Assembly: GCA_009103225.1 (NCBI GenBank)
Contig: RHPI01002910.1
Coordinates: 1 to 64,000, forward strand
Direction of reading: 5' to 3'
Length of the DNA: 64,000 bases
DNA from: Chlorokybus atmophyticus
Lineage: Eukaryota > Plantae > Mesostigma and Chlorokybus algae
Position numbers and translations under genes: made by a program. The notes under the pieces were generated by a model, which made no database searches, was not told the origin of the DNA, and was given only the letters and a program-made list of their open reading frames with translations. Shown here one piece after another: positions 2,326-63,552 of this stretch; position 1 is the stretch's first letter; each line of letters starts with the position of its first letter.

Positions 2326-5300
2326 CTCATAGGCTGCACTCCACTGGACGGTGCAGCCTATGAGACAGGAGTTATGGTGGTCCATGAGCCCGCCCTTTTA
2401 TCACTTTCTCATCGGCGGCACTTGTTAGTTGCTATAGGTCTACGAGTCCTAAGAAGTGTGTATGTGTACATGCATGCATGTGTGCATGACGAAGAGCCCA
2501 TGAGAGAATAAGATAGAGAAAGAAAATATGCATGCTTGCACGCATGCCCGTGTGTGTGCGCTTGCGCATGCATGTGCGTATGCGCGCACATATCCTCCCC
2601 CTTGCCCTTCCCTCGCATTCGCTCACCTTGAGGTACAGCGGGTGCATCTGATTGCAGCGCCCTCCGGTCGTGCGCTTTGAGAGGAGCAGCAGCATCGGGC
2701 TCCCCACTGACAATGACGCCTCAGATCACGTATGCAGTGACTGTTTCAGACACGTGTACAGTGGTATATATGTCTGTATGTGCACAATCAGTCATGCCAA
2801 AGCCAGCACGCACGCACGCACATACATACACGTACGTGCGCACACATGCGTACACGCACTCGAGTACATGCACAGGCACGCGCGCCTGCAAGCAATGTAT
2901 GTGGACGTCATACGCAAGTGTCAACAAGCAGCCCGCCTATGACTGGCATCAACGGATCAGGTATCGTTGGCTCATAGGCCGCACGGGTTAGTGCGGTCTA
3001 TAAGCCAACCTAAAGCAACTGCCTCATAGCCCGCACTTGACAGTGCGGCCTATGAGCCAGCCTATGAGGCACTATTTTAGCTAGCCCAACACATGTGTGT
3101 ATGTGTGCACGCACTCACGCACACATGCACACTCATGCGGTTGGGCACACACATACACACACACTCATCGCACCTTGAAGATGGGAGTGGAGAGCTGGGG
3201 CAAGATAGTGCTTGCGTGCGCAAAGGCGTGCACTGCAAACTCTTTTTAGCAGCGAGTTGCTGATTGCGCCCTGGGGGGGGGGGNCAGCCCGCATGCACAT
3301 GACTGCCTGAGCAAACACATGCGCATTTGCATGTGCATGGTTGTATGTGTCTGCGTGCTTCGCTATGAGGAGAGCGCGGGAGGGGGACCTTGTTGACATG
3401 CACAATGTACATGCAGACTCGAGCGGTTGGGAACTGCCTCGTGGGCCGCATTGGACAGTGCGGTCTATCAGCCCGACTTGAACTGTGTGTACTTGAGTAT
3501 GTACGTGCATGGGTCACGATGAGCACATGTACTACAGTAGTACTTGCACGCGTACGTGCGTGTGCGCGTGCATATGCGCGCACATACTCTCCCCTCCCCC
3601 CTCCCCCCCTTCCCCTTCTGCTCACCTTGAGGTCCAGGCACCTATTTGCCGCGCCCCCGGTCCTGCACTCTGCAAAAGAGCAGCTCAGGGTGGTCCCGGC
3701 GAGGAATCTGGGCAGGAGCTCTTAGTTGATGCATGCGCGTGCATGCATCAAAGGTGCTACCTGCAGCATAGTAGAAGGTGAAGAAAGGGGATGCATGCAT
3801 GTGTTGGCAAGTGCACATGCGTGCACGCGTGCAGGATAGATGGAGAAAGCAAGCCCCCCCCNCCCCCCCCCCCGTGCTGGCAGGCACGCCCGAGTGTGGC
3901 TATTGATGACCATTGAAGGACACAATCGTGCATATGTGTGCTAGCTTGCTTTGGGTAAAGCCGTGCCATGCCAGCCAGCCCCCTTCAAGACTTTCTTCCC
4001 ACACACACAGCAAGCTCCTTGCAATTCCTCGTGGTGATCTGTCGGGAAGCGCACGTGGCCATACTTGATATTTGCGGCGCCTGCCTCCCAGCTCTCAGCA
4101 GCCGCCGGCCTGCTAGTGGAGATGACTGTAAGGTAGAGCACAGTCATGCATGCGTAAATCACAGTGCGTCGCCCATCAGCACAACACCGCAAGCAAGAGC
4201 GCACGCGGTGTTGTAGGTGGCTAATTAAAGTATGCACTTGCAAGCACATAGTACTACTATGTTTAGACTGTGGAGCAAAAGTATACACGACAAACATGTG
4301 CAGCTGGTCACTTTTACCAGCCCACACGACAACTATTTGCAGCTGGTACCAGACCGCAACGCATAGACAGTCACAGCGACTGCAGTGTGTGCACCTGACA
4401 GCCATGCAAGCATGCTTGCCTTACAGTACAAGGGTATGTGCTGCATGCTTGTGTGTCTGCATACATGTATGCAAATGGTCCGCAATGCAGTGCCTGCAAA
4501 CAGTCATGCAAGCCTGCTGAAACGTGTACATGAAGGCATTTGTCAAGAAGTACAGTGCTTCAAATGCAGTCGCTCAGTAGCAGTGCATGCATGCGTGCGT
4601 GAGTGCACATGTATGCGTGCGAGAGAGCCGCCACCATGTGCATTGCATTTGTAAAGCGATACACGCATGCAACCATATGCATTCGCGAGCGTACCAGCCA
4701 AGCGTACCAGCTGAGCATCTGCCTGTTGGCTCGGTGCCACCCGCACCACATGTCGCCCGGCAGCAGCCTGCAGCACCCTGCGTGTTATGTGTACATCATG
4801 GAGCAGCATTGTCCAAAGTCGGACGCAGTCTTGGCACTTCCACACAGCCGCCTATGACTTTTAGTATCCAATGACCAGCTTGGTCACTGGATTTTACAAG
4901 TCATAGGCCGCACTGGTCAGTGCGATCTCCCAGCCAGCATTACAGGCTGCACTGCACAGCGCAGCCTATAAGGCTACGCTAACAAGTGCAGGTAGCCAAC
5001 AACTGTGTGTATGTGTGCATGCGTGTTTGCATGCTCGTGACAATAAGCGCTTGCGTGCTTGCATGCGCATGCATGTGTGGACACTCCAGTCTATAAGTTA
5101 GCGGGGGAACACACATGTTAACATGTGTAGCGTACATGCAGTACTGACTGGCCGCACTGCCCAATGCATACTATAAGCCACTCTACAGCAACAGGCTCAT
5201 AGGCCGCAGTGGACAGTCCAGCCTATGAGCCAGTTGCTGTAGGTTAAGAAAGCGTGTATGTGTGTGTACGTGCATGCGCCCGAGATGAAGTGCACATGCA

Positions 5301-5700
5301 TGCTTGTGCACGTGCATGCGTGCGTAATGACGAGCACATGCATGCTTGCACGCGCATGCCCATCTGCGCGTGTGTATGCGCGCACGTATCCTCCCCCTCA
5401 CCCCCCCCCCTGTTGCGCTCCCAGCAACATAGCGTAGTACTCCCTTTGCTGCTCNNNNNNNNNNNNNNNNNNNNNNNNNNNNNNNNNNNNNNNNNNNNNN
5501 NNNNNNNNNNNNNNNNNNNNNNNNNNNNNNNNNNNNNNNNNNNNNNNNNNNNNNNNNNNNNNNNNNNNNNNNNNNNNNNNNNNNNNNNNNNNNNNTTCGC
5601 TCACCTACGGTTCAGTTGAATCTCATTGTAGCGTTCCCGAGTGTTGCACCCTCTGAGCAGCAGCGTTGGACTACCCCCACCAACCCCCATCAAGACAGTT
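2326..5700. repeat. degenerate internal repeat modules with ~8 GGCTCATAGGCCGCAC-N6-11-GTGCGGCCTATGAGCC hairpins
   Basis: Hairpins at ~2326, 2969, 3023, 3437, 4901, 4941, 5150 and 5194. Recurring block of CA/TG tract, polyC and GCTCACCT at ~2500-2720, ~3500-3720 and ~5240-5700. Confidence 0.75.
5455..5595. other. assembly gap
   Basis: Run of N. Confidence 1.
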
Positions 5701-6889
5701 GCAGCCATGGTGGTGCATAAGCTTCTCTTATGCACGCGCGTGCGTGCATGCGCGTGCGCGTGACACCCTGCCAGCATTTGAGTTGGGGTGACGAGGAGTT
5801 GCGCTGAAAGACTGGACGGTCACTGCACGTGCAAATACAAAGCACACCAAACTAGCTCTATAAGCTTGTACATGCTTGTAATGGTTGTAGCTAGTATGCA
5901 AGTACATAACAAGAGTGCAGCAAGCATGTACATGCCTTGATTGCACAAGCCATGTGCAAACGTCCCAGCAAAATAGTGCTTGCGCGGTTGCTGGCTGACA
6001 TTGCTTTACCTGAATACAACAATGAGGCTGAAACCGTGCAGGTGCATCCACACAAGCAACGCTGGCTGCCTTAGGCAAAGTCTCACAATGCAAGCATGCA
6101 ATTGGCCATGACATCGGATAGTCCATTGTGACATATCTTGGTCACAACAAGCAGCAAAGGCTTGTAGATGGTGGACAAGTGCTGAGCAGCCTGCACTGAG
6201 TGCACGCATGCAGACCGGTGTTCAAGTGCATTCATGTGCAGGCGTGCATGCATATGTGCTTGACTGTTGACGACACAGCCCAACGGTTTGATTCAATTGT
6301 GGTAGAGGTTAATGCTACAGCTATAGCGCCGCAGCAGTGCCTGCTGCTGCAGCTGCTGTAGCAGCTGCAGCAGCTGCGACTGCAATTGTAGGCGGCTACA
6401 GCGGCTGCGGCTCGTACCATGGCTTGCGTTGTTATTTTTGCTCGCGAAGCCACAACAGCAGCAAAGTACAATAGTAACGATGTCATTGACAACAACGACA
6501 CAATCAGCGCAACCAATGGTAGCAGTACCGACAGCAGGAGCTCCAACTGTGGCATCTGATTTAGGAATGCCATATTCAAAAATCAACTTACAGCAAGTTA
6601 AGCGCAGTGCGATGGAGAACATGGCTACTTGTCTGCAAGTTAGTAGGCTTGATAGGCTTTACCTCCAGCACCGCCGCCGCCTCCGCCGCCTCCAGCTCCA
6701 GTAGCTTGCCGCTAACATCAACCAATGACGCAAGCAGTGCCTCAGTGCGAATTAGGGTTTCAGCACAGGATGAGTACAGTGTCGTACTTGCCGCTCTGCT
6801 GACGTTTCAAGACCGCGGCTAGATCTTACCACAAAGTCCATGCATTGTGGCCGGATGCGCGCTATTTGCTGTGAACAACGACGTACGGA

Positions 6890-7100
6890 CCAGACTTGGT
6901 CACAACTGCTGTCTTTCTGGTACCATTGTTCCGCGCGTTCGCAGGCCGCGGGACACGCCACCAGCCCTGGTCCGGTCATTCGGACCATGTCGGTGGGCTC
7001 CGGGGCCGGACCACCGGTGGTCCGATCATGCCGGACCAGTCGCGGCACTGGTACGCTACAACGTACCAGACGTGGTCTACGGGCTGCGTACCACTGGTCC
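6890..7100. repeat. right subterminal GGACCA/TGGTCC repeats of the CACTA-like element
   Basis: Repeated ggacca/tggtcc in both orientations just inside the right terminus. Confidence 0.75.
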
Positions 7101-7122
7101 GCGCGTAAAAAGCCCTGTGTAG

Positions 7123-10001
7123 GTTGCCTAAGTATAGTGGGAGACTTGGAAGAGTCAAATGAAATTGATTGGGAAAAGGTACACCCGGCGGTAAGGGAGT
7201 TTATGGATATATTCTCCGCGGATCTACCAAGTGCACCGGCAAACAGGTTTGTCTCCCATTTAATCCCACTAAAGAAAGGGGCTGAGCCTCCGCCGTTAAG
7301 GCCATTGTATAGGCTAAGTCCTAAGGAACGTGATGAAGCAAAGAAGCAGGTGAACTATCTCCTAGAAATGGGTTTGATAGTTGAATCGCAAAGCCCCTAT
7401 TCGGCTAATATAATTTTTGCCAAAAAGAAGGGAGGCACGCTCCGAATGTGTGTTGATTATAGGTCATTAAATGCACAAACGGTGATGAATGCCTTCCCCT
7501 TACCGCGTTTGGATGATTTGTATGATCAACTAATTGGGAAGTCGTGGTTTAGCACCCTCGACCTAATTAGTGGTTATCACCAAATACTTATCGCGATAGA
7601 AGATAGGTATAAGACAGGGTTTAAAACCCCTATGGGTCATTGCGAATATACGGTGATGCCATTTGGCTTGTGCAATGCGCCAGCCACATTTCAAGCGGTA
7701 ATGAATGAAGTATTTAAAGAGGAGGTAGAGTAATTCGTCCTAGTGTACTTGGATGATGTTATTGTATTTTCGAGTACAAAAGAGAGGAACATGTGCTTCA
7801 TTTACGAAAAGCCTTGAGTAGGCTAAGGGAGCATAAGTTCTTGGCGAATTTCGAGAAGTGTGACTTCTTTGCCAGGGAAGTAGAGTACTTGGGTAATGTA
7901 GTGAGCAAAGATGGAATAAAAGGCGATCCTAAGAAACTTGAAAGAGTTAAAGACTGGGCTGTTCCTAAGAATGTAACGGAGTTACGGAAATTCTTGGGTT
8001 TTTGCCTATGGTTCCGCCGTTTTATTTTAGGCTATTCAATTATAGCCGCCCCACTCACTACTTTAACAAGTACCCGAAAACCCTTTGGATGGGGTCCTAA
8101 AGAGCAGCAAGCCTTTGAAAGGCTTAAGGCTGCTATGACCTCACTTCCGGTATTGGAGTTGCTGGAAATGGAAAAGCCATTTGAGGTAATAAGTGATGCC
8201 TCTTTGGCAGGAACCGGGGCTATACTAGTGCAAGAGGGGCATCCAATAGCCTTTGAAAGTTTCAAGTATAAGCCCGCGGAGAAGAATTACTCGACCACCG
8301 ATCAAGAATTATTAGGTGTTGTGAAAGCGTTGCATAGATGGAGGTGTTACTTAGAGGGGAGGCATTTTAAGGTGATAACTGATCACAACCCCTTAGTACA
8401 CCTAAATACGCAACCTAATTTGTCGCGACGCCAAGTAAGGTGGCATGAGTATTTATTGCGATATGATTTTGATTGGGAATATAGGCCAGGTAGGATAAAT
8501 GCGGCAGATCCTTTAAGTAGGCATCCCGCATTGTCCGAGGATTTGGCATTACTTTCATTGGATTATGTGAGTGACATTCCTAACCAAATAATCGCAAGTT
8601 ATACCAATTGCCCGGAGTTCCTTTTGGAATTCAACCAAGTGTTAGAACCACATGGGGCATTTTGGTATAAAGATGAAGAAAAAATTGCGGTTCCAATGGA
8701 TGGGTCACTTAGGTCAAGGTGATTGAAGAATCACATAATCCCCCTTACCATGGCCATTTTGGTATAAGAAAAACTACCGAGTCTTTGGCCATGAGGTATT
8801 GGTGGCCGACCTTAAGAATTGATGTTGAAAACTTTGTGAAGAATTGTGACTCATACCAAAGGAATAAATCCGTAAGGACAAAACCGGCCGGGAAATTACA
8901 ACCTTTACCCATACCAGAGGGGGCTTGGAAGTCAATGTCAGTTGACTTTATAGTCCAATTACCAAAAACGGTAAAAGGGAATAATGGAATGGTTCTATTT
9001 GTAGACCGGTTTAGTAAAGTTGTTCACTTAGAACCAACTCCTCCAAAATTTACGGGCGAGGATTTTGCCCATGCCTTTTTTAGGAGATGGTATTCACAAC
9101 ATGGGATGCCCGTGGATATGATTTCGGATAGGGATTCGCGGTTCACTTCCGCTTTTTGGGGTGAATTATGTGATACATTAGATTTGGATGATAAGTTATC
9201 CACCGCGTTTCATCCTCAAACAGATGGGCAAACCGAGCGTGTGAATCAGACAGTGGAACAACTATTGAGGCATTACTCACTTAAGAATATTAGAGATTGG
9301 GATACATATCTCCCTTTCGTTGAGTATGCCATCAATGATTCAGTGAATGAGTCAACATGGATGACACCATGTTATATTGGCTATGGCCGCCATCCATTAA
9401 GTCCGGTTGAGGCTTATATGGAGAATATGGGGGCTAGGAAAAGAGTCAACCCCTCGGCTCAAATTTTGGCTCAACGATTAGGGCAGGTGCAAAATGAGGC
9501 CAAGAGGGCCTTATTAGCAACCCAAAATCGTATGCGTCAATATGCCGATGTCAAGAGGGCAGAGGCCGTGTTTGAAGTGGGACAAGAAGCCCTACTTAGC
9601 ACGAAGAATGTGAGGATGGAGTCTCTCGACGGGGCCCGAAAACTATTACCCCGATGGCTTGGACCAGTTAAGGTAATAGAAAAGGTAGGGGCTGTGGCTT
9701 CAAGTTAGAATTGCCACCGAGTCTTAAAATACATAATGTATTTCATGCCTCGCTATTGAGAACCTATCACTTAGATGGGTCGGTGTAGCCACCACCACCC
9801 CCAATGTTTATACAAGGAGATTGGGAGTATGAAGTTGAGGGTATAATAACCCACAAAGGCCGGAAAGGCAGATCCCTCAGTTTTTTTGTGAAATGGAAGG
9901 GCCATCCGTTCGAGGCATGTGAATGGGTTGACGAACCTAACATGCGATCACCGCTTCTGATAAAGAAATATTGGAGGGAGCTAACGGTTGCCCAAAGATG
10001 A
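7123..10001 (+). pseudogene. pol (RT-RNase H-integrase-chromodomain), disrupted
   Basis: RT motifs LRMCVDYRSLN, FSTLDLISGYHQI and VMPFGLCNAPATFQ, with YLDD at ~7746 just after an in-frame TAA. RNase H motifs SDAS, ELLGVV and TDH. Integrase HHCC-like region plus SVDFI, ISDRDSRF and QTDGQTER. Chromodomain YEVEGIITHK...FFVKWKG...EW at 9804-10001. Confidence 0.95.
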
Positions 10002-10160: not shown

Positions 10161-11499
10161 TGTTACGGCCTAGCTACTATAGCTGATCATGTACAGTGTA
10201 TATATAAGTTTAATTAGCGAGAGACAAAAGTTTAATAAACCTTGGTTGGATTATCTTGGTTTGTTATACAAGCTTTGAATGCGTGTGTTTGTATTTGAGC
10301 TTTAACACAAGTGCAATGCATCGCTAATTATGGGCCTGGCTAGTTAGAGCATTTATATGCATCTAATTAGAAGTGGTTGACTAGGAATTACCCTATTCAT
10401 GTATGTATGGGCGTCTTGAGTAGGAAGATAAAAGCATATGGCTTTATTATAATGATTTATTAACGCGATGTGGGCTTATGGGGTCAATCGCATGAAACAT
10501 CATAAGAAAAAGCATGTGTAATTATAAGGTTCATTTAGGCCAATCCAAGGCGGCTTATTTGAATCAGTTGACTAGAGCGAAGTAGCCTACCTAGGGTGAA
10601 CAAAAAGGACTTCGCGAAATGAGTTCGCGAAGGGGTTGATTCACCTGCGAAGTGAATCGACATAGTGAACTAACTGAACTAAATTAGTTCACTGGTTCAG
10701 TTACGAACATGAACCAAAGTAGTTCACTAGGGGTTCGTAAGTGAACCAAATTAGTTCACTGGTTCAGTTACGAACATGAACTAAAGTAGTTCACTAGGGG
10801 TTCGTAAGTGAACTAAGTGAATCACCCTAATATGAGGGGACTAATAGAAGTGAGAGCCAAAAGTGAATCACTGGTGAACTAAGTTAGTTCGCTAGTAGAG
10901 TGATTTACAATGCCGATAAGGTAGTGAACTAAAATTGATCGCGAAGTGATTTAATAGTAGATTCACTAGTGAATCAACTATTAAATCACTTCGCGACGCG
11001 GCGTCGCGATAGAAAACCGGCTAAGGCATTGGCCCCCTCCCGCGTGTGCCAATACGCAGCGCTATGGCAGCGCCGTCTACCATGGCCGCAGGCACAAAAA
11101 TCGCGGATTCACATTGTTGGTCACTTTGCAGAATGCCAGTGAACTAATGCCGGGTGAACTAAACTAATCACTTGGGTGAGTGAATGGGGATCTCGTAGAA
11201 GGCTTTGGACCAAGAAGGTCTTAGCCAAGATAGTTCCTAGTAAAGCTCACGGCGATAGAGATCGCCAAAACAAACAAAAGAGCCAGTCGCAGGTGGAGGG
11301 TAGCCGCCGCGCGACTTGAGCTCTGGGCTTTTGGGACTAAGGTAGGGGTACCTAAGCTAGGTGACCATAACCCTTAAGTTACCAAGTAGTTGTTCATTCA
11401 ACGAAAGGTGATTAAGGGAGTGTACAGTCACTACATGTAAAAGTGTGTGATCACTGTACATAGTTTTTGGTGTGATTTGCTCCTCCGCGCGCCGTAACA
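10161..11499 (+). repeat. 3' LTR (~1.34 kb)
   Basis: Starts TGTTACGGC directly after the PPT and ends GCCGTAACA, a perfect 9-bp terminal inverted repeat. Confidence 0.8.
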
Positions 11500-25109: not shown

Positions 25110-28100
25110 CTATCTTATGGCACCTTGGACCATATCATCGAAGTCAGCCTCATCTTCATCTGTGGAGAAGTCTTCTGAGCTGTCATCGCTGTCCATGCTA
25201 TCGCTGCCCAGCATGCCGTCAAGCATCCCAGGATGGCCCATGCCATCGCTTTCATCATCAGAAGCCAACTCAACCAGGGCATCAAGTGGTACACCAACAC
25301 CTTCAACATTGATGCCGTTTGCTGCACAAGACCACAAGTCAAGGCGATGGCCATATCGCTCACATCATACAAGCGGTACAGCACAATGCCTATGTGTCCA
25401 TACCTGCCAACTCGGACTCTTCATCACTACCCAGCACACCGTCATCATCTACATCAAGCTCAGCTTCATCATCCTCATCGTCGTCCTCTTCATCTGTGTT
25501 GGCCATGTCATCCGGGTCTGGATCAAGTGGCCGGCGACGACCGACCTCATACACCCGGACAAAGGAGTCCCTCCGGAAACCGTCAGATGTTCTATCGGCA
25601 GCTGCTACGGCTACAAACGAGTCAGTAGACTCAACGGCAACATCCATGACACAGCGGTCCACCTGCCAAGAGAAACATATCTCAGAGAGACAGAATTAGT
25701 AGACACATGACACTACCTGCAGCTCAGCATTGCAAGAAGGATGAGTGTAGATTGTACCTCAAAGGTGTTGATATGAGAGTAATCAACGGCATCAACAGTA
25801 CGGAATGACGACCAAAGCGGATGCTTCCTGTGCCGAGCGTGCAAGACGCTGCGAGGGTCTTCTGTAGGTCGGCGCAGATGGGCATAGATAACATCCCCTG
25901 TACCATTGAAGCAGATTGCACTTCTGTCCAGAGAGGGAACGCTTCTCAACAGCTTGTATGTGCGCAAGTCCCACACCTGTATTGCAAGACAGCAAGGGTT
26001 ACGTGTATACCTGCAGCGTAACAAAACATGACATGGCAAACAAGATCATTCAACGAGAGCTACCTCTGAGTTGAGAATGGCCTCATTCCCTGATGGATGG
26101 AACCGGCCTCCACCATTGTCAGTGAACTGGTCGAAGCGATGAAGCACAGTCGGCACGCGATGATCCCATAGCTCATTACCCCACAGCAAGAGGGCATCAG
26201 ACGGGCTGAAGAAGGCGCCCACATGGACTTGGCGAGCGCTGTTGCGACCAGTGTCTGACAGTGTCTGCACAACCACGCCTGTTCTCACGTCATGGATTGC
26301 GGCCTGGACAAGAGATGGTACCGTCAGTGCTGTTGCCCACAGGCCAACAAGAGATCGAAGGACACTAATTGCTTGCTGGTACTTACGTAGACATCATCCA
26401 TGCCATCCGTCCGTGGTTCGGATGCTATTGCCACCATGCGGTCGCCTGCATGATTGAAACGACCGGCATGGCACGAACTGAAGGTGTGTTTGGCTCCACC
26501 ATTCATGTCTTTCACATCCCACAGCTTGACTTCTTGAGGAGTTGAGGAGAGAAGCATGTCCTTGCCTTGATACCTCAAGGACTGTACACATTGCGAGTCA
26601 AGACTGTCAGCAAAGACTACATGCAGAAGACTTGCTATGCGGAGCACAAACTTGCTTTCTAGTCTGGATGCAGTGCAGATGAATCGCATTGACATTGTCA
26701 GCTGCGTATCCAAGGCTAGCTGCCATGCTGCACAACTTGTTGAACTTACCTGCAGCAAGTTGATGGGCTTGTCGTGTGCAGCATACGCATCCCCAGCTGC
26801 AGCACTGATGACGTCATACTGGCGCAAGGAGCCGTCATAATTGCCAACCATAATGCGGTTGTAATCCCCAACAAAGGTGACTGCCGTCATAAACAGCAGA
26901 TCGTCTTCTTCCCGGAACGTATGCCAATTGCGAAAGCGGCTATACACAAAATGACGGTCATGACGCCGGCCACCTGGGCCACCATTGGAAGCATTGCGCT
27001 GGCGAGCATGCGAACGGCTACAAACATTTAGGGGTGCGTCCAATGGCCTGCGCGGCTCAGGACACACATGTGGCTGCACAACAACAGTCAATCAGTCCTA
27101 TGTACAGGAGTGGCACAAAGGTGATTGGCATCAGAACTTGACAATGGACGCACCTGTAGCAAGGAGACAGGTGGCAAGGTACTGATTGGTACTGGACACT
27201 GTCTGTGCTGATGCTTTAGATACTGAGTGACAATGCGATCCAGCGCACTACCCCCGCCGTAGGAATGTCCACTAAAAGCAATTTGTTGGCCAGCAGGTGT
27301 TGAAGAGACTGCATCGCTGCTCAACTTTACTGGGGTGACATAGGTAGAGGCATCTGCAAACTGAAAGTACGACTTCTGCGAGCGTGTTGCAGCCGGTGAA
27401 ACATTAAGCGTGGCAACCGTCACAGTTGCTGACTTGGTGACAGGCGCAGCTGTACCGAATGTCGGGCCCGGTGTTGGACCTATGGCAGCAACAAGAGGCG
27501 GTGATGATGGAGTGCTGACACCAGGGTCCGGTTCAGTGGCACAGGGTGGTGACAACGGACCACGTGCAGGCAGCGGAGTGTTTGCTGGTCGTTTGATCCC
27601 TTTGACCCTTTCGAAGCGATCAGTTTTGCACTGGTTGTGCTTTTTTGACATGGAAGCCTGAGCACTTGGGGACTGGGTCCAAGTTCGACTATTTGGCCAT
27701 GAATACACAGGTTTGAGGCCAGCAGGTCCTTGAACAGCTTGCTGAGGAGCAGTGGGTGTCTTCACAGACGGGGAAGGAAGCCCAGCTTCAGTCAGCAATG
27801 CCGCCGCGGTTGTGTGCAACCCGCTGGAGGCTAAGTGCTCATGTATGAGCTGCAGCAACTCTTTGCTCGGGTAGTTGATGGGTGTGCTCGCAACAATGGC
27901 TGCCCTCTCAATCTTGTGCATGGCTGGTGCAGCGGCATCTGTGGCAGCTAGTGCACTTGCACGTCCAGCATTTGTAAGCAGGCTAATTAACTCCAGAGCA
28001 GCTCTGCTAAAATCCTTGTGCTGATCCCCACCATATGTTGCTTTGGCCAAAGACAGCGGCTCGCGAACAAGGTCAGACAAGAGACGTGCCACCTGCAGGG

Positions 28101-31100
28101 GCATTCAGCACTAGACTGAGATTACAAGCATAACAGAGGTGATGATGTGCACAGCTTGTTCCTAACGTAGTGTACACTGCTGTAAACATTATGGCAAAGG
28201 GTACCTGTAATTTGCCTAAGATGTGTGCAATGGCAGGATCACGGGCCAGACCCAGCAAGACCTTGCACGCCATTGCTCTTATGCTATCAGCAGCAGAAGG
28301 TATGCTTCGATACTGCAACAAAGAGAGCAACACCTGCAAGGGCGACACTAATCAGGAGCCGCTGCTGACGGTTACAACTCGACAGCCGTACATACCTTAA
28401 TGCCATTATTGGCCCGCAAGCATTCCCTCGTGTAGTGGTAGCCCTGCTCAACAACAGGCGAGCACTCTGCCCTGCTGGAAGAGGCTCGCCTTTCAAGGTG
28501 AGGATCAGCTGCATGCTTGCTGGCTGACGCAGGTCCACTGGTGGCCGCGCTCTGACCACTGCTTGGCTGCTTGACCAGTGATGGCGGAGGACCCACCAAA
28601 TTTGCAAGCACTTGGAGAGCCAGCCGGATTACCTGACACGTCATACAGTGACACACATCACATGGCGTGGACACACACTTGACTGAGCTAGTTGTGTCAT
28701 GCCCCAGGCAACTTTTTCTCACCTCAGGATCGTTGCTGTGGGAGTTGTGCGCAGTCGACAAGAGGACAGCCATGCCACTCCTGTCATTGCTGAGGACTGT
28801 GCCGGCTATGTGCCCATGTGTTGACGGTATCAAGGTGATTAAAAGCAGTGTAGCCAAGGCTTCAAGCGCAATGTCATGAGCATAACGTTCATGAGGCGGA
28901 CCCTGAACCAAGTCCAACAGAACAGATGGTCCGCCGTAGTCCATGAAGCGCTCTAGTGTTGGCCACTTGATTTTGGCCAGAGCACAGGCAACCCGTCGAT
29001 CCTGCGCAGACAGTGCTGTCAGTTGACACAAGCAACACAGCCTGCTGCACTAAACTCGTAGTGCTTATGTCGCCGCACCTGCTCTACCAACTTGAGAAGA
29101 CCAGCAATGGCCTCATCGCCAATATCCATGGGCTTGTACACGGCCCTTCCAGCACCTTTGGTCCGTTGCTGGGCTTTTTCTTTTTCTTTGGTTGTGCGCA
29201 ACGAGTCCACAAGCACAGTGAAATGAGCGCGGAAGTACTGGCGGAAGGCTTTGCAGGCATGGCTGGCCACTTGTCTGCCCGCGGATGTCCCATCATGAAC
29301 CAGTGCAATATGGCGCAACAAGTTCAGCAGCTGACGCATGCCATCCTGTCAATAACAACGTCAGCAAGTGTGACGGACTACAAATCAACAGGTACATGCA
29401 AGACAACTGCAAGCTTTACCTTTGCATCAAAGGCGTCCAGAACGACACGGAAGGGAAATGCTGCTGCGAAAAACAATGCAGCATTCTTGCGAGCAGGATC
29501 ATGAGCACAAGCGAGCAGCTCCAATGCAGCGCTAACAACATCAGCTGGAACTGGTGATGGCAGCCCACAGATGCGTTCCATAACCACCACATTGGAAGCC
29601 AACCCAAACAAGCAGAAAGATATCCCAGCGTATGTATAAGGTGCTCGTGGTAATGCTAATAGCAACTGCACAAGACAATGATCCTGTGAATAGCAGAAAC
29701 ACCACGCATGATGTCCCATACCAGCAAGGCAGTGACCCACCTGCACACCGCCGGCATCCACAAGCAGGGTAGCAAACCTCCGGTGCGCCACAAGAGCACA
29801 GACCATGTGCAAAGTGTCATTCAAAAGCACCAAGTCACCACCATGACGCCGAAGCAGGTGCACGACAACATCAACTCCGCGCTCCTGGCAGCCAACATGG
29901 GGTCAGAAAAAGAACAGGTTCAGACCAAATCAGCAAGCCTTGTAAGCATCTCACCTGAAGAACAGGCCCTAGGCACTCTAGATACTCCCCCATGCAGGCC
30001 ATGCACTGAATGCTGTAGCGCATGCGAAGTGCATCCAGTTGCGGTGTGTCATCAATCTGACTGCTTGCGGCGGGTTCTGCTGGTGGCAGCGCGCGTGTCG
30101 CCTCCAAGGAGGCAATCGTGGTCGAGTTTAGGTCAGCAGTGGGTGCCTCAGGCTCAGCACTTCTGGGAGATGAAGGCATTTCTCTGGCCTCAGGATCGTC
30201 TGCGTTCTCCGCATTGTCACCTGTCCGCACAGACTGATCCCAATGCACTCGTTTGCGCCTGGAAACATCAGAGCTAGTTGCATCTGCTTCAGTGCCATTA
30301 GCATCTTGGAGCCGCAGGCGTTTCACAGCAGGTGCATGGTCTGTGTCTAGCTCAGAGTCTGTTGCAGCATCGGCTCGAATAACCTCGCCCTCTTGCCGTT
30401 CTGTATCTTTCCTCCCTTCTTTCAGCCGTGCGATCTTCTCAGCTGTCCTTGGCCAGCTGCCAGCAATTGCATCCTGTTGCGCTGATGCTTCGTCAAGAAG
30501 TCGTGCAGGAGAAGGCAGCAGCTCTGATGTACGGCGTGCAGCATCGACGGGTCGGCGCAAGGGCAAGTTGGTTGGTGCATGTTCACGATTGGACACCTCT
30601 AGAGTGGACGCTACCTTAGAAGCTGCGTCGGACCTACCGACATGCCTGCTTGCGCCAGACGCCCCTACAGTCATTTGCCGCAGGTAGCGCATCAACTTGG
30701 CAACTATGCTGGTGCGCACGACATCATTCACAACTTCCTCAACTTGCAATGCAAGAGCGAGGAGGCCAGTGGCGTAAGTTTGAAGACGCTTCCAATCCAG
30801 CTGGTCTCCAGCTGCAGAGCGCGCACACAAAAAACCACACCTCAATGCCCCTGATCCCAGCTGTGCAATATGCGCATTCAGGCAACCCTCGTGCCCTGTA
30901 CCTGCCACCTGCATGGCACCCGGTTCGCCTTGCACCCATTCTTTCAACTTTTCCAGTAAACCCTCATCGGTGAGGGTGGAAGAGTACTGCATGCTGGTCA
31001 AAAATGCCAGAGCCAATCTGGCTGCAGCGGCGCGCACAGCAACCGGGCTGCGCCGTTCAAGCAAGTATTCCCCAACCACCTTATCGTCCAGAGTCAAGTA

Positions 31101-34346: not shown

Positions 34347-34630
34347 NNNNNNNNNNNNNNNNNNNNNNNNNNNNNNNNNNNNNNNNNNNNNNNNNNNNNN
34401 NNNNNNNNNNNNNNNNNNNNNNNNNNNNNNNNNNNNNNNNNNNNNNNNNNNNNNNNNNNNNNNNNNNNNNNNNNNNNNNNNNNNNNNNNNNNNNNNNNNN
34501 NNNNNNNNNNNNNNNNNNNNNNNNNNNNNNNNNNNNNNNNNNNNNNNNNNNNNNNNNNNNNNNNNNNNNNNNNNNNNNNNNNNNNNNNNNNNNNNNNNNN
34601 NNNNNNNNNNNNNNNNNNNNNNNNNNNNNN
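34347..34630. other. assembly gap
   Basis: Run of N. Confidence 1.
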
Positions 34631-37041: not shown

Positions 37042-40000
37042 ATGATGGTGGGAAGCTCAACTGCTGCGGCAGGGAAGCTGCAATTTGCAGCTGTTCTGGG
37101 CTGTGTTGCAAGCCTGCTGCTGCTTACGCCGGTTTTCGGGCTATACGAGGACCAAATCGGGCACATTGACTGGTGTGTGAGCTAACATGAGGTTGCATGC
37201 ACAGCGTGGTATGTGACATGCATGCACAGCGTAAGGTGATGCGAGCTGCACATTCACCAGCATTGCACTAAGGCGCATACTGGTAAGTGTGTTGCCATTA
37301 GTGCACTGCCTGCGATGAAGCACACATGCACATTGATTGGATAAGTATGGCATGTGTATAGCGTATAGCGAATGATTTGTTTGACATAAAGTCTTAACCC
37401 AACTGCCCTTGAGTACAGCATTCTGTATGCTTGCAACGCTGCGCACGTTGCTTCCATGCTGTTGGCTGTACACGAGTGCAGCGCCAGAAACGCAAACTTG
37501 TAGCGCGCGTGGTGAAGACGCGAGCATGTGCCGACAGTGGGCTGACTTGTTTTGCGCTTATGGTGTGTGGCACGTTTTGCACACGAAATGGCTGCAATGC
37601 GACAGTTTGTTCAACCGCAGGCACCAACAGCACATAGGCAAGGTCACCACGGTTCTGTTTCCTGGCGTTGGCTCGAGGAAGAGAGTTGTAGTGGCGACCG
37701 AGCAGAGTGTTCTAGCAACCCTCAACTTGCGGGATGCCTCGATAGGTGCGCATGTTTCCTTAGACAACAGACATTATAATTAGCTGCATGTGAGTCTCGC
37801 CGATTGCTTCCTATTTGCAGTGTGGCGGCAGGTGTTCGCGGAGCATGACCCCATCGACAAGGTGCTGCTTGCCAAGAAGAGTAAGTCATGAGCGTGCGGT
37901 GGGTGTATCGTATGCTGTTTTGGTGCAGATTACTGGATGTTCTTTTGGCTTACTGGTTGATGGACGACATTTGTGTACTCATTGTTGATGGACGGTCGGC
38001 AGCTATTGTCAGCATATCCAGTCATGGGCAGCGTGTACGAGCCTGGAGCTTGTTGGATGGAGCGTTGATATGGGAGCACCTCATCATCTCCACCTCAGAT
38101 CTGCATGTTCAACCTTCGCATGAAGATGCTGTCCTTATCACGGTATGCATTGTTGCCAGAGACATGGCAACACACTTGTGCAATCCCAGTGCACAGCTTT
38201 TCTGCAGGCTGGTAACACTCTATATTGCAGTTGGATGATGGAACAGATGCCCTGTCTGTGCTCGCTGGCGGCAGCATTCAGCTGTTATCTCTTGAAGATG
38301 GCGCTGTGAAATGGAGTACAGGGGCCAATGTGTAAGTCATGCTGTGGGAACATCTGCGGTTGCAAGCAGGTGGTCTGGATTGTGGTGTTGTGTCCGGGGC
38401 CCTTCGTTGGGAGTACTGTGTCTGATGACTCATGTGCGTGGCAGTTATAAATCGTCGTATTCAAAGCTGATCTATGCTGAAGAGTTGAAGCGGCTGTATG
38501 CGTCTGGCTTTGTCCACACAGAACCAGGCAGTGTTACTGCTTCAGGCAAGTGGTCTTTGAGTGACTGTGGCGATCACTTTGCCTTTTGGTATGCATCAAG
38601 ATGTTGCACCATGGCTGGTTTGATGGTGTCGCTTTGGTTGGGTTTGGCTGGCATGCTGTCATGGTGCCCTTGTCCGTTGTATGTTTGTGGTGGCTTGTTA
38701 TACAGATACCAAGAGCAGCATTGCTGAGTGTGTACTGCAGGTGTGCAGGTGCTGGCACTTGATGTTGTGACAGGCAAGACGGTCTCATCCAACACAGTCA
38801 CTGCCAAGCTGTCGCTGCTATGCTCTCAGCTGGTGGCAGTCAACTCAACTGCTACTCTGCTCGCAGTGGCAGCGGATGGCGGGCATGTTGTCACCCTTGA
38901 CCTTTCAAAAACACCAACATTTGTACCTCATGACTTGGCTACACAGCTGGGGGCTTCCACTTCACGTTTGTCTTTGCTGCCGGCAGTCATCTCAGGAGGT
39001 TTTGCTATTAAAGTGAAAGGCTCAGACAAGGGCGCTGCCATTTTCAAACTGGTTGACGGTGTGCCTAAACTGTTGTACACGGCCCCGCAAGGTGCTGTCA
39101 TTACAGACGAGCTGGTTGTTGAAGATCAGACAGCTGTTGCAGCAGTGTTCCCGCAGCAAAGCGGTATAGAGTATGAGGTGATCAGCGTATCAGACGGCAC
39201 TGTCCTCGCCAATGACGCAGTTGAAGTCGACATCTCTGAAAGAGGGCGACTGGAAGCAGCATTCCTCAACTCGTACCCGCGAAGACAGGGCACTGGACAA
39301 GGCTTCCGTGTTTGGGTTGTGCATGCGGACTACTCATCGGCGCTGCTGCAGCAAGGACAAGTCATCTGGTCCCTGGAAGAAGCACTGGCTGCTGTCACAG
39401 ATGTGAAGATTATTGACCTGCCTACTGACCATGTGGTTGCCAAGAAAGGCTTGCTGGACGCTGTCAAAGAGTTTGTTGAAGATTTCGACGTGGACAGCAT
39501 CACCAATTGGGCGTATGGCCATTATCTGTCAATAAAGAATGCCCTTCATGCAGGCACCCCTGAGGAAGTTGAGTCTCTGAGAGAGTACCTTCAGGTGTGT
39601 CCATGCTCTCTCTCTCTCTCCCTCTCTCCCTCTCCCTCTCCCTCTCTCCCTCTCCCTCTCCCTCTCTCCCTCTCCCTCTCCCCCTCTCCCTCTCTCTCCC
39701 TCGCCCGCCCTCTCTCCCTCGCCCTCTCGCCCTATCGCCCTCTCTCCCTCTCTCTCCCTCTCTCCCTCTCTCCCTCTCTCCCTCTCCCTCTCNNNNNNNN
39801 NNNNNNNNNNNNNNNNNNNNNNNNNNNNNNNNNNNNNNNNNNNNNNNNNNNNNNNNNNNNNNNNNNNNNNNNNNNNNNNNNNNNNNNNNNNNNNNNNNNN
39901 NNNNNNNNNNNNNNNNNNNNNNNNNNNNNNNNNNNNNNNNNNNNNNNNNNNNNNNNNNNNNNNNNNNNNNNNNNNNNNNNNNNNNNNNNNNNNNNNNNNN

Positions 40001-42874
40001 NNNNNNNNNNNNNNNNNNNNNNNNNNNNNNNNNNNNNNNNNNNNNNNNNNNNNNNNNNNNNNNNNNNNNNNNNNNNNNNNNNNNNNNNNNNNNNNNNNNN
40101 NNNNNNNNNNNNNNNNNNNNNNNNNNNNNNNNNNNNNNNNNNNNNNNNNNNNNNNNNNNNNNNNNNNNNNNNNNNNNNNNNNNNNNNNNNNNNNNNNNNN
40201 NNNNNNNNNNNNNNNNNNNNNNNNNNNNNNNNNNNNNNNNNNNNNNNNNNNNNNNNNNNNNNNNNNNNNNNNNNNNNNNNNNNNNNNNNNNNNNNNNNNN
40301 NNNNNNNNNNNNNNNNNNNNNNNNNNNNNNNNNNNNNNNNNNNNNNNNNNNNNNNNNNNNNNNNNNNNNNNNNNNNCTCTCTCTCTCTCTCCCCCTCTCT
40401 CTCTCTCTCTCTCCCTCTCTCTCTCTCGCTCTCCCTCTCTCTCTCTCGCTCTCTCTCTCGCTCTCTCGCTCGCTCGCGCTCGCGCTCTCGCTCACACTCT
40501 TGCCTATGTGCAGGCCACAAGCGAGAACAACAAGATGACGCGTGATGCCAACGGGTTCCGCAAGCTGATCATAACTTTAACAGAAGCTGAACAATTGCTA
40601 GCGCTTCACACTGGGAATGGTCGCATCGTCTGGTCTGCATTTTACGGCCCTGGCAGCAGCCGCTGTGCAACTTGTTCTGAGTTGAAGTTGAAGAAGCTCC
40701 TACTTTGGCGCGCTCATGCGTCCCATAAAGGCAATGCTCCACAGGTATGCATGGCGCATACATTGTGGGGTACCTATGGCAGAGCCAGCTTACACAACTG
40801 TCTCCGAAAGATGTTTTGCTATTGTTCCATGCCCAACACTGTCATACTTGATCTCATGCATAGGTGTTGGTCATTGGTGAAACGCCCTCAACAAACACAG
40901 CTTGTCTCCTGTGGTTGGACGCGCATACAGGCAGAGAATTGCGCTCCCAGACGCTGCCATATCGTGTGAAACATGTCATTCAGCTGCCGTACTATGACAC
41001 TGATGACCAGTCGCTGCTGCTGCTCGTTGACAGCACAGGCCGAGCGCATCTGTTTCCTGAAACAGAAGAGGCAGCTGACATCGTTGCCCCTCGTGTTGGG
41101 GCAGTTTACTACTACGACATCAATGAGGCTACGGGTATCCTCACCGGGTATAGTTTCAATCTGAATGCAGTGGCAGTACCAGTCACCATCACCTTCTTTG
41201 AATGGCCATTGTAGCAGCTGCAGGCAATGTGCACATGATCACAAGTGATATTCTCTCATTCACAGCTATGCCCTTACGGCATTGCCTGGGCGAGACAAGT
41301 TGACATTCGGTTCGCTTGAGCTGTGGCAAGTGGCGTTCCCATCCAACATGAAGATCGCCGCCGTGGCATCGAGGAGGTCAGATGAAGTGGCGGCGTCAAG
41401 GGCGCGTGTCAAGGGCGACCACAGCGTGCTGTACAAGTACCTCAATCCCAACACGCTGTTTGTCGCCACCACAACCTCTGCTGACGCTGTCGCTGCTGGC
41501 ATTGAGCCCCACGTCACGGCCTACATTCTAGACACAGTCACCGGAGCAGTTCTCTACCAGACCACCCATGCCCAGGTGAAATGTGTTACAAGCATGCTTA
41601 GTGTAGCTTTCACACAGCCTATTGATTTGATGCCAGTCAACGCGAGCCGGAGTTACAGACACCACCATTGCAATGACGGCATTTGCTGATGCGTGCGTGC
41701 ATTGCAGGCAACAGGGCCGGTGAATGCTATGCTAAGTGAGAATTTTGTAGTCTACAACTTGTTCGATGTTAATGCCCACCGACACCAAGTTGCAGTGTTT
41801 GAGCTTTTTGACGAGAGTGCTGAGTCCACGCGTACCATCTCTGAACTCATGGCCACCACTAGCGTCCAAGGTATTCGCCTAGCTGGAGATGTGCAAATGA
41901 GCTAATGGAATGCGACTTGTCCTACAATCAATACAATAACGTGCACTGCACTCTGACTGACTGGTATAGGGGCATGCCAAATATGAATTTGTGTTTTGCA
42001 GCCATAGTGAAACAGGTGTTGAATTGGTGGACTCGCACAACGCCAGCGACACAGAGCAGCTTGGTACTGCCAAAGCTGCGGGTGTTTGGGCAGTCGTACT
42101 TCTTCCCTGAGACAATCAAGACGCTTGCAGTGACGACCACAGCGCGTGGAATCACCAGCAAGTTGGTGAGCAACGCAGCATGATGCTATCGCCCAGCGCA
42201 TATGCTTCCGCGTATAGAACCCGCACGCAGTCATTCATGTTGTGCATGTCATTGTGTGCGTGCACAGTGAGACCCCACCCTATGTATGCACACATTGGCA
42301 TCTGTGGTTCAGGTGTTGATCGGTACCGGTTCTGATCAAGTGCTGGGCATGAGCAAAAAGCTGCTGGACCCTCGTCGACCATTGGTGCCTACAAATCAAG
42401 ACAAGGAAGAAGGCTTGCTGCCTTATGCTGATAAGCTACCTGTGCAGCCGCAAGCGTATGCGACACACAAGTTGCAGGTAACTGCTGATTTACGCTGGTG
42501 TGCAACAATGCTTCTGTGTCTGATGCTTCAAATCTTTTTCCTCTGCCTGCGACTAATCTGTGCTGTATTCGTAATGATGTGAGGGCCGATGGGTGGTGTT
42601 AGAGTCATATTGCTGACAAAGTCAACTCGCAATACAGGTAGCGAAGTTGAAGAATATTGTTACTGTCCCAGCGCGTCTGGAGTCAACATGCCTGATGTTT
42701 GCACACGGCATCGACATTTTCTTCAACCGTCTCGCCCCTTCCAAGACATACGATTTGCTCACAGACGATTTCAATTACGCGCTACTCGTGCTAACCATCA
42801 TATCTTTACTTATCGCGTTGGTGGTTACGAGCTACTTGAATAGGAAACAGGACTTGAAGAAACGGTGGAATTGA
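37042..42874 (+). CDS. EMC1: ER membrane protein complex subunit 1
   Basis: Signal peptide plus LYEDQIGHIDW|HQQHIGK, RKRVVVATEQSVLATLNLR, RDANGFRKLIITLT, GDHSVLYKYLNPN, TTARGITSK, LESTCLMFAHGIDIFF and FNYALLVLTI (C-terminal TM). The first exon (37042-~37171) is absent from the ORF track. Confidence 0.93.
39603..40495. repeat. (CT)n/(CTCTCC)n microsatellite inside an EMC1 intron, with assembly gap 39793-40376
   Basis: Simple repeat flanking the N run. Confidence 0.95.
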
Positions 42875-58815: not shown

Positions 58816-61800
58816 CTAGTGGGCCACTTCCTCAGTGGCATCTTCTTGAGATTCGTCGTATGGGATAGGAGAATCTTGGTCAGAGTTGTGGGTGACCACC
58901 GCAGATGATTTGTCAGTGGTTGTCAAAACCGACCTGTGAGGCTGCTGCAGCTGACCCGTCAGTGGTCGTCGACATCGACTTGTAGGTGGCTGTTGCAGCT
59001 GACCGTCGGTGAGAGCGAGTGCGAGCCACCAGCTCGAGAGGCAAATATCCTTGAACCTCTCCATCCTCCTCATCCCAATGGGGACGAAACCATGTCTTCT
59101 CTGTCCAGCAATCCAGCCCCATGCCAACAGAGAAGTTGAAGTCCTGTCCCAGCAACAGGTCGAAGGATCCTGCGTCGGTGTCCACACACTTTTGTATGAC
59201 CTCGGTGCTGTGCGAAGGGTCCACCCCTGTCAAGCGAATGCAGAGGCTTGCTTGGTGATGCCAATCACCTTGTTACGGCTGCCGGTTGCTGTGTCGAGCA
59301 CATATGGGCACGGCATCATCTCAGCGCTGGTAATGCCAAGGTCGCGTGCGAGGTAATGTCCGAAGATGACAGGCTGGGCTCCAGCGTCCAGCATTACACG
59401 CTTGGGTGCTCGTCCATTGATAGTGACATGCTTGCCTTGATTGGCCATTATGGCTGCGCTGGCGTGGACGCGCAGCCGCTTGAATCGTCAGTAGCGTGTG
59501 CGTGGGGTGACTGCTGCTGCAGTCTCCTCCGGTGGTGTCGAGCGCAGTGCGACAAGCGCCCCTCGACAAGCTGGGTCTTAGGAACCTCCTTGTCCGCCTG
59601 GCCCGAACCGTCCTTGTCTTAGCTGTTGGAATACGTGCTGCGGCCTAGGTGCTGGCGGTGCTGCCTGTGGTTGCCCTGGTTGTGGCGCACGGGGATTGCG
59701 CCGCTGTGTGGCCAGGCTTCATACCTGGCGGCGTAGCCAGTGGCTATTGAGGAAACCCTGAAGGATCGGGTGATTGTGGGCCCGCTTCCCGTGCAGCCTG
59801 TTCTTCCACATATGTCTAGCGTATAGCATGAGCTGCCTCCCTGACCAGTGTACCTTCCCATGTGGCTGTTGGATTGTTGACCACGTCATTCCAGCGGTGA
59901 TTTTGAGGCATGGGCTGGAGATACACTGCGCGCAGGAGCCGCGCTCTTATGCCGTGAGTGATGGTGGGAACCCTTAGGATCCCTGCCATGTACGCATCCC
60001 ATCCGCCATTAACCACCCCCACTTTCAGCATCGTTGTTGCTCGTGCCCACAGTGAGGTAAATCTCTGGCTGTTGGACATGCTGCTCGTAAGCAGCTGCAA
60101 TGCATCTGCGTTGCCGCACTGCTTCCACCCCTGGCAACCTAAGTATTGTCACAGCCCACTCGACCACAAAAGACTTGGTGCTTTTATGGTCGATTTGTGG
60201 TAATTTAATGTACCTTCCCGTTACATTCCCCCCCACTTAAGAACGCTGACGTCCTCGGCAGCTGGCGCTCATCAGCTGGGGAATCTTCCCAGGGGTCTGA
60301 TTTAGGGTCGGTCACCGGCCCCACCACCCAAGGACCGGCTAATATAGGCCCATACCGGTCAACGCGCGCATAGCGCGCCGCTGCCGGCCCCACAGGTCGC
60401 GTCGCCGCGATAGGCAGGTCGCGCCCTGCCGCGCCGACTGAACTGGTCAGTTCGGCGCGACTGCCATTAGGCAAGTCGCGACCCATCGATGATGGCACTC
60501 ATAAAGTGACCATTTACGATGTCATTGGATCGAGAAACAACGACCGCGGAATTCGTGTGCAAGGCAGGAATCGAACCCGGGTCTCAAGCTCCGATGACCA
60601 ATGTCACAGCCCACTCGACCACAAAAGACTTAGTGCTTTTATGGTCGATTTGTGGTAATTTAATGTACCTTCCCGTTACATTCCCCCCCACTTAAGAACG
60701 CTGACGTCCTCGGCAGCTGGCGCTCATCAGCTGGGGAATCTTCCCAGGGGTCTGATTTAGGGTCGGTCACCGGCCCCACCACCCAAGGACCGGCTAATAT
60801 AGGCCCATACCGGTCAACGCGCGCATAGCGCGCCGCTGCCGGCCCCACAGGTCGCGTCGCCGCGATAGGCAGGTCGCGCCCTGCCGCGCCGACTGAACTG
60901 GTCAGTTCGGCGCGACTGCCATTAGGCAAGTCGCGACCCATCGATGATGGCACTCATAAAGTGACCATTTACGATGTCATTGGATCGAGAAACAACGACC
61001 GCGGAATTCGTGTGCAAGGCAGGAATCGAACCCGGGTCTCAAGCTCCGATGACCAATGTCACAGCCCACTCGACCACAAAAGACTTAGTGCTTTTATGGT
61101 CGATTTGTGGTAATCTAATGTACCTTCCCGTTACAAGTATGGCCTCTTGAGCTCCTTATAAGGTGTCAGTGGCTGTCGAGGCAACCTCGTCATAGGCTTG
61201 CCGTAGTGAGCGAAGGAAGGCGTCCAACCAGAACAACATGGTGCCGAATGCAAACAGAGGGACTGCGGGGTAATTGGTGACTAGCCAAGTCTCTAGTCTT
61301 GCTTGAGCTGCATTGCCACCTTCTCCCATCCCTAGCATCCGTCTCAAGCCAATGCCTTCTTGTCGGTGTAGCATGGTTGCTTGTCGCAACAGGGCTGTAC
61401 AAAGTTGCTGTTCTCCGATCGAGCCTGCTCCATCCCGTTGTGTACACCCTTGTGGTGTGAGGTAGCCCCTTCCTTGGATCTCGTTGATCGTCAGGCAAGT
61501 CTTCCAACAAGATGGGTAGCAGCGGGGCGATCACCCCCTGGTTTGTTGGGCCAGCGCCCTCGCCTGGTCAATGTCGGGCTCACCGACTAGAGGTGTCGTG
61601 CTGAACAATGGGCCAGCGACTGTTGGTTGAAGAACGAGAGCGCGAGCAATGGCAAGGGCTTGCACTCTTGCATGAATTGCTGCAGTTTGGTCCTGTCGCC
61701 AAGTAAACGCCTGTTCCAGAGCGGTGTAGCGCTCATGAAGTCGAATGGTATTGAGGGGCCTCAATGCTTCGCTGTCACCCAACGGTATGTCGGCTGCTTA

Positions 61801-62790: not shown

Positions 62791-63109
62791 TTCCAGTCAT
62801 AGTAGCACCATACGACTCATTTTAGGTAAAAATACGCTTTAATACTAGTATACCAAGCAGCATTTGTCATACCACTCGAATACGGCCTAAAATACGACTT
62901 TTAGGGTTATATATGGTGTTTAATGAGATATTTTCGATTCTAATGACTTTCTACTTGCAAACCCTTATTCCACCGCCTTGGAACGCAACAGACATTCTCC
63001 TAGCGGCGGTCTCCTTGGCGTGGGCGGCGGTGGCGACGGGATTGTCTTACTTGCCCTGCTTCCACAGACGCCTTGCAAGCAAGATATTCTCTCACTGTCA
63101 CACACGCAC

Positions 63110-63500
63110 GCACCCACACAGTTAGTCTACCTCCCTCTCTCTCTACCTCTCTCACACACGCACATACACACAATCAGTTCATCTCTCTCTCCCTCTCTCC
63201 CTCTCATAAACGCACATGATTGCGCGTGTGCATGCAGTCCAGACTGACTGCTCTCCCTCTCTCACTCTCACACACGCACGCATACACACAGTCAGTCTAC
63301 CTCCCCCTCTCTCTGTCACACATGCACATACAGGCAGTCTATCTCTCTCTCCCTCTCTCACTCTCACAAACGCACACACACAGTTAGTCTCCCACTCTCC
63401 CTTTCTCCCTCTCACACACGCACGCACAGTCAGTCTACCTCCCTCTCTCCGTCTCTCCCTCTCACATACGCACATGCACACGCGCATTCAGTCCGCCTCC
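63110..63500. repeat. degenerate ~60-bp minisatellite (cacacagtYagtctacctccctctctc...)
   Basis: About six imperfect units built from CT and CA tracts. Confidence 0.7.
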
Positions 63501-63552
63501 CCCTCTCTCTATTTACTGAGCACTGACGCGCGCAATGTGCAGACGCTGTGTC

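Follow-up and report, generated by a model that had tools for sequence, protein, structure and literature searches.

A tandem TRIM array with an apparently split tRNA-like module in the streptophyte alga Chlorokybus

The window analysed here, a stretch of 64,000 nucleotides of Chlorokybus atmophyticus DNA, contains at 60147-61135 what its sequence identifies, barring an assembly caveat considered below, as a non-coding LTR retrotransposon (TRIM) in the form of a tandem array in which three LTRs alternate with two interiors. The complete reading that we propose is that of a tandem TRIM on the minus strand which carries a split copy of a tRNA and which became an array through misalignment of its LTRs after integration. 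We would give this reading, with all of its parts, about an even chance of being correct. The identification of the locus as a tandem-array TRIM agrees with a preliminary description of the same DNA, and all the features by which a non-coding LTR element is recognized in sequence are present. The assertion in that description that the element is young and recently mobile went further than the data allow.

Structure, orientation and coding capacity of the array

Within the 64-kb window, TRF reports 60147-61135 as a single array with a period of 455, 2.2 copies, 99% matches and zero indels. A repeat search of the window resolves three 79-bp repeats, L1 (60147-60225), L2 (60602-60680) and L3 (61057-61135), with spacings of 455 and 455, so that the exact period given in the preliminary description is confirmed. 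All three start with TGT and end with ACA, and thus have the TG...CA termini of LTRs. A 30-mer from the repeat has three occurrences in the window, as against 0 in 100 shuffles. Base-by-base comparison finds one mismatch between L1 and L2, at position 31 (G versus A, at 60177, in the hairpin loop described below), and one between L3 and L2, at position 59 (C versus T, at 61115). Each outer repeat therefore has one private substitution, in keeping with the one or two substitutions previously counted between the repeats, and the middle repeat is without either private variant. The interiors at 60226-60601 and 60681-61056 had been called near-identical and are closer even than that, being the same at 376/376 bases.

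The sequence AGTAT adjoins the array on both sides, at 60142-60146 and 61136-61140. This is the single flanking target-site duplication (TSD) already noted for the locus; its 5 bp are within the 4-6 bp expected of such duplications, and 5-bp identity by chance at fixed positions has a probability of ~0.001. As assembled, the locus has the structure of a TA-TRIM (L3I2), defined by three or more LTRs and two interiors that run the same way and share LTRs between units.

The signals at the junctions set the orientation of the element. On the minus strand, the end of the LTR (..GTGACA) is followed by one T and then by a PBS-like 13-mer that starts with TGG, TGGTCATCGGAGC, found 1 nt past the end of L3 at 61043-61055, with its second copy at 60588-60600. 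Also on the minus strand, a polypurine tract (PPT), AAGTGGGGGGGAA, abuts the next LTR. It is the reverse complement of 60681-60693, where it abuts L2, and of 60226-60238, where it abuts L1. The minus strand thus has a PBS after the 5' LTR and a PPT before the 3' LTR. On the plus strand, the repeats are neither followed by a PBS nor preceded by a purine tract. Because it is only on the minus strand that the PBS-like and PPT-like sites fall at the proper junctions, the element runs from right to left. It begins with L3 as its 5' LTR, followed by the upstream interior (60681-61056), the shared middle LTR L2, the downstream interior (60226-60601) and, as its 3' LTR, L1. The preliminary description was right to place a PBS-like site and a PPT in each interior; the strand, which it did not give, is the minus strand. 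The 13-mer would resemble the plant initiator-Met PBS, from which it would differ by one indel and one mismatch.

Each LTR can fold into a hairpin with a stem of 12 bp and a loop of 8 nt, at 60616-60647 in L2 and also at 60161-60192 and 61071-61102. The hairpin of 11/12 bp reported earlier is real. It forms 11/12 pairs on the plus strand (z -2.7) and 12/12 on the minus strand, on which the mismatch becomes a G-U pair (z -3.7, with 0/200 shuffles as good). A stem that is perfect only on the minus strand is a further sign that the RNA has the sense of this strand. Within the hairpin, the 3' arm overlaps the A box of the tRNA-like module and contains the sole T4 run of the element strand (60623-60626), which lies a short way upstream of that box. 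The interior has no T4 run, an absence without statistical significance (P = 0.54).

A monomer of this element would be 534 bp, and its ORFs have no Pfam match, as is usual for a small TRIM that lacks gag and pol. No coding function can be recognized in the interior, whose ORF of 97 aa has neither a Pfam match nor relatives in a word-based protein search. Neither blastn of the 455-bp unit nor self-comparison of the sequence finds further copies of the unit in the 64-kb window. Exact-pattern scans of metagenome and prokaryotic genome contigs, collections that are not expected to hold this alga, gave no match.

Could the array instead have arisen by tandem duplication of a tRNA-derived SINE, or simply by local duplication? 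Any tandem of 2.17 copies yields "three short repeats and two spacers", and tRNA-type A and B boxes are present, as in a SINE. However, the array is bounded exactly by TG and CA, with the 5-bp duplication outside, and the PBS and PPT are placed at the junctions. The boxes are inside the unit rather than at the 5' end of the element, as a SINE would have them, and the element lacks a tail, whether A-rich or LINE-like. We consider an origin of this kind highly improbable beside that of an LTR element.

Elsewhere in the window, three successive ORFs at 6840-9708 on the plus strand, with RT, RNase H and integrase zinc-binding domains, represent a Ty3/Gypsy pol fragment. It was rejected as the autonomous partner of the TRIM, since it has no detectable LTR pair and no PBS in common with the array. 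Downstream of this fragment, two tandem 67-bp units at 10671-10804 are 96% identical and have a palindromic core. Adjoining ORFs at 26324-28104 on the minus strand have LisH and WD40-type beta-propeller similarity, with DDB1- and CUL4-associated factor 1 and HIV-1 Vpr-binding protein as distant relatives, and are probably exons of one host gene. A degenerate CT/CA-rich tandem array with a period of 48/96 bp occupies 63088-63510. None of the ten ORFs that flank the TRIM array has a Pfam match.

A tRNA-like module at the LTR-interior junctions

The LTR and the interior each contribute one of two boxes of the tRNA type. Read on the minus strand, the final third of each LTR includes the A box, TGGTCGAGTGG. 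Where an interior follows, a canonical B box, GGTTCGATTCC, comes 33 nt further on, 25-35 nt into the interior and past the PBS, and the end of the LTR falls between the two boxes. One such module is at the L3/interior junction (61012-61080, minus strand), with its A box at 61066-61076 and its B box at 61022-61032. The second is at the L2/interior junction (60557-60625, minus strand), with its A box at 60611-60621 and its B box at 60567-60577. In the 3' LTR, L1, there is an orphan A box at 60156-60166 (minus strand) with no B box downstream. The A and B boxes pair in this manner only at the two LTR-to-interior junctions in the window, and no such pair arises in 200 simulated windows; for the B box taken by itself, the expectation is 0.16 occurrences per window. 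By these motif matches, a tRNA-type box pair appears to be complete only where an interior follows an LTR.

Is this a tRNA gene? Run with standard settings, ARAGORN reports no tRNA gene anywhere in the window. At a relaxed threshold it returns a very degenerate cloverleaf at each of the two modules (60557-60625 and 61012-61080), and a weak match to the tRNA clan of Rfam covers 60559-60636 (15 bits, E 1.3). Such degeneracy, together with the two boxes, characterizes the module as an apparently decayed tRNA copy that has retained its promoter boxes, and not as a tRNA gene. We assume that its origin may have been a tRNA-Gly. The stretch at 59687-59794 on the plus strand, some 350 bp from the array, weakly resembles tRNA-Sec by covariance score (23.6 bits, E 0.17, against a gathering score of 47), probably by chance.

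The boxes might possibly direct transcription by Pol III despite being split. A more specific proposal is that this is a Pol III-driven TRIM, in which the tRNA-type promoter comes together only at the junction of an LTR with an interior that bears a PBS. We put this forward tentatively, as something that the arrangement of the boxes suggests and that we think rather unlikely. If it were true, the 5' LTR or the middle LTR could fire and the terminal 3' LTR could not. The LTR hairpin and the single T4 run would then set the ends of the RNA, with a very short R region. The array of three LTRs would amount to two complete transcription units, each giving a monomer-length template, and with two units per array the formation of the tandem would double the output of the locus. 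Should the split promoter work, it would constitute a second way for an LTR element to make use of Pol III, and one by which outward transcription from the 3' LTR is avoided. For annotation, elements such as this one are a source of tRNA-like false positives and of tandem loci that are sensitive to assembly.

Origin of the array and the assembly caveat

How does one element come to have three LTRs? The single TSD excludes two independent insertions. The preliminary description took it to mean that a multimer was integrated as a unit or that LTRs had recombined, and these are the right routes to consider. In the mechanism that we favour, the element would have been copied by the reverse transcriptase and integrase of some autonomous LTR element; a tRNA would have served as primer at the TGG-start site past the LTR, and the plus strand would have been primed at the G-rich purine tract. 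One integration would have been followed by misalignment of its two LTRs, through unequal sister-chromatid exchange or replication slippage. This would add one unit of LTR plus interior and retain the original target duplication.

The substitutions in the LTRs bear on this mechanism. In element orientation, L2 has the base of the 3' LTR at position 21 and the base of the 5' LTR at position 49. L2 is thus the exact recombinant predicted for a crossover between L3 and L1, or else the consensus of the family, and this is weak evidence in that 3/4 of the possible middle-LTR patterns would fit and there are only two events. A recent exchange between LTRs also predicts that substitutions will be confined to the outer LTRs. 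Both of those observed are in the outer LTRs and none is in the 752 bp of interior, which has a probability of P = 0.026 if all parts are of the same age. The single TSD, the recombinant-like L2 and the restriction of substitutions to the outer LTRs modestly favour misalignment after integration. A counter-point is that an LTR of 79 bp offers little length for homologous exchange. There is precedent in other plants: in sugar beet, ~71% of tandem copies retain TSDs and are ascribed to intra-element recombination (PMC13570524), and the arrays of maize Wukong have been interpreted as the result of unequal crossing over (PMC4528315).

Alternatively, the dimer may pre-date integration. It could have been formed as a multimeric cDNA, by repeated minus-strand transfers between co-packaged RNAs, or by recombination between cDNAs, and then have been inserted with one TSD. 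This route would leave one TSD and identical interiors just as readily. Multimers of Ty1 cDNA and multimeric integration are documented in yeast (PMC7524711). In maize, tandem and inverted dimers of Zma-SMART under a single TSD have been validated by PCR (PMC4717578). Inverted dimers are impossible by LTR-LTR crossover. However, parts of the same age would give the observed distribution of substitutions with only the probability stated above, although assembly averaging could mimic that pattern, and no feature of the locus specifically requires the route. We regard a dimer formed before integration as conceivable, with the chances clearly against it.

It could also be that a unit was added to a monomer already resident at the site, through homologous recombination of that monomer with linear cDNA or with a one-LTR circle of 455 bp. 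The same three-LTR array with the original TSD would be expected, and references given in one account of Ty1 (PMC7524711) document that Ty1 cDNA recombines with elements in the genome. This route requires that the resident interior match the incoming one despite two changes in the LTRs (P ~0.09). It seems to us improbable, more so than integration of a ready-made dimer.

Is the number of units itself an artefact of assembly or gap closing, the true locus being a monomer, or an array of some other count, of a multi-copy family? There are N-runs of 1, 1, 141, 284 and 584 bases in the window, at 3284, 3862, 5455-5595, 34347-34630 and 39793-40376. Variable runs that include single Ns give it the look of a gap-closed short-read scaffold, and the number of units and the identity of the interiors are insecure for that reason, as are the copy numbers of tandem repeats in other stretches of this genome. 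The published Chlorokybus assembly was made from Illumina/BGI reads with SOAPdenovo (k=85), GapCloser and Pilon (PMC7027972), a method that agrees with the pattern of Ns, and we infer that the window derives from it. The 455-bp unit exceeds Illumina read length, and the count of such units in a gap-closed short-read assembly hinges on insert-size estimates. That L2 is without private variants is as expected of a family consensus. On the other hand, k=85 is longer than the 79-bp LTR, so that a path from interior through LTR to interior needs real spanning reads. Assemblers also collapse tandems more often than they expand them, and the array has no N within 20 kb. An artefactual unit number is accordingly an unlikely explanation, albeit one to be taken seriously.

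The same caveat affects the age of the element. In a short-read assembly, differences between the interiors would be averaged away, and the variants that are anchored are those within read length of the unique flanks, where both substitutions sit. Flank-anchored variants and averaged interiors would together mimic the observed pattern of substitutions, which weakens both the argument for misalignment after integration and the description of the element as young. The divergence of the outer LTRs is 2/79, or 2.5%, for which the Poisson range is wide with two events. With this error, and with the identity of the interiors insecure, the claim of recent mobility was overstated.

Comparison with known elements

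The array alone is textbook TRIM behaviour and adds little; its form and the length of its LTRs are ordinary. Tandem TRIMs have been described for 129 subfamilies in 35/43 plant genomes (Gao et al., PMC4717578). The form with three LTRs and two interiors is the commonest in maize, where it makes up 63/93 tandem arrays (PMC4717578), and 15/89 intact Wukong elements of maize have at least three LTRs (PMC4528315). The preliminary description had considered the LTRs unusually short, and 79 bp is indeed short. It is not exceptional, as LTRs of 52 bp have been recorded for a TRIM of 233 bp (PMC4717578). The preliminary description had TRIMs and their arrays as known mainly from land plants and some animals; TRIMs have already been reported in the algae Chlamydomonas, Volvox and Chondrus (PMC4717578). 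The array described here is like the TA-TRIMs Zma-SMART and Wukong in having three LTRs and two interiors in one orientation, with a shared middle LTR and one 5-bp TSD, and in being non-coding with less than 1 kb per unit. It differs from them in that it is found in a streptophyte alga, is unrelated in sequence and carries tRNA-type boxes.

Two other types of small LTR element share features with the array, and each was rejected as an identity for it. Retrozymes are likewise small and non-autonomous, and have a structured RNA in the LTR. Unlike retrozymes, the array has no hammerhead ribozyme match in Rfam scans, and the interior has a lone CTGATGA without ribozyme context. Cassandra is a TRIM with Pol III promoter elements that also forms tandem arrays of LTR plus interior (PMC7215508). 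The LTR of Cassandra contains 5S rRNA sequence, in contrast to the array, for which Rfam scans gave no 5S rRNA match.

The closest likeness is to Helenus and TRIMp3. Helenus elements are TRIMs with tRNA-derived sequence in the LTR, and TRIMp3 elements are TRIMs with putative Pol III promoters (Kojima 2024, PMC10886601). The sole plant Helenus reported is from Selaginella (PMC10886601). As in these elements, there is a PBS, a PPT, a 5-bp TSD and tRNA-derived sequence that retains boxes A and B, and in neither case is a working tRNA probably encoded. The boxes are present here although the covariance score is weak. The difference is in their placement. The tRNA-like sequence of Helenus is within the LTR, whereas here the half with the A box is in the LTR and the half with the B box is past the PBS. 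If the split promoter works, elements like Helenus and TRIMp3 would be extended to an early-branching streptophyte alga. The split tRNA-like layout, with its putative promoter, is on present sequence a modest variant of the Helenus/TRIMp3 kind.
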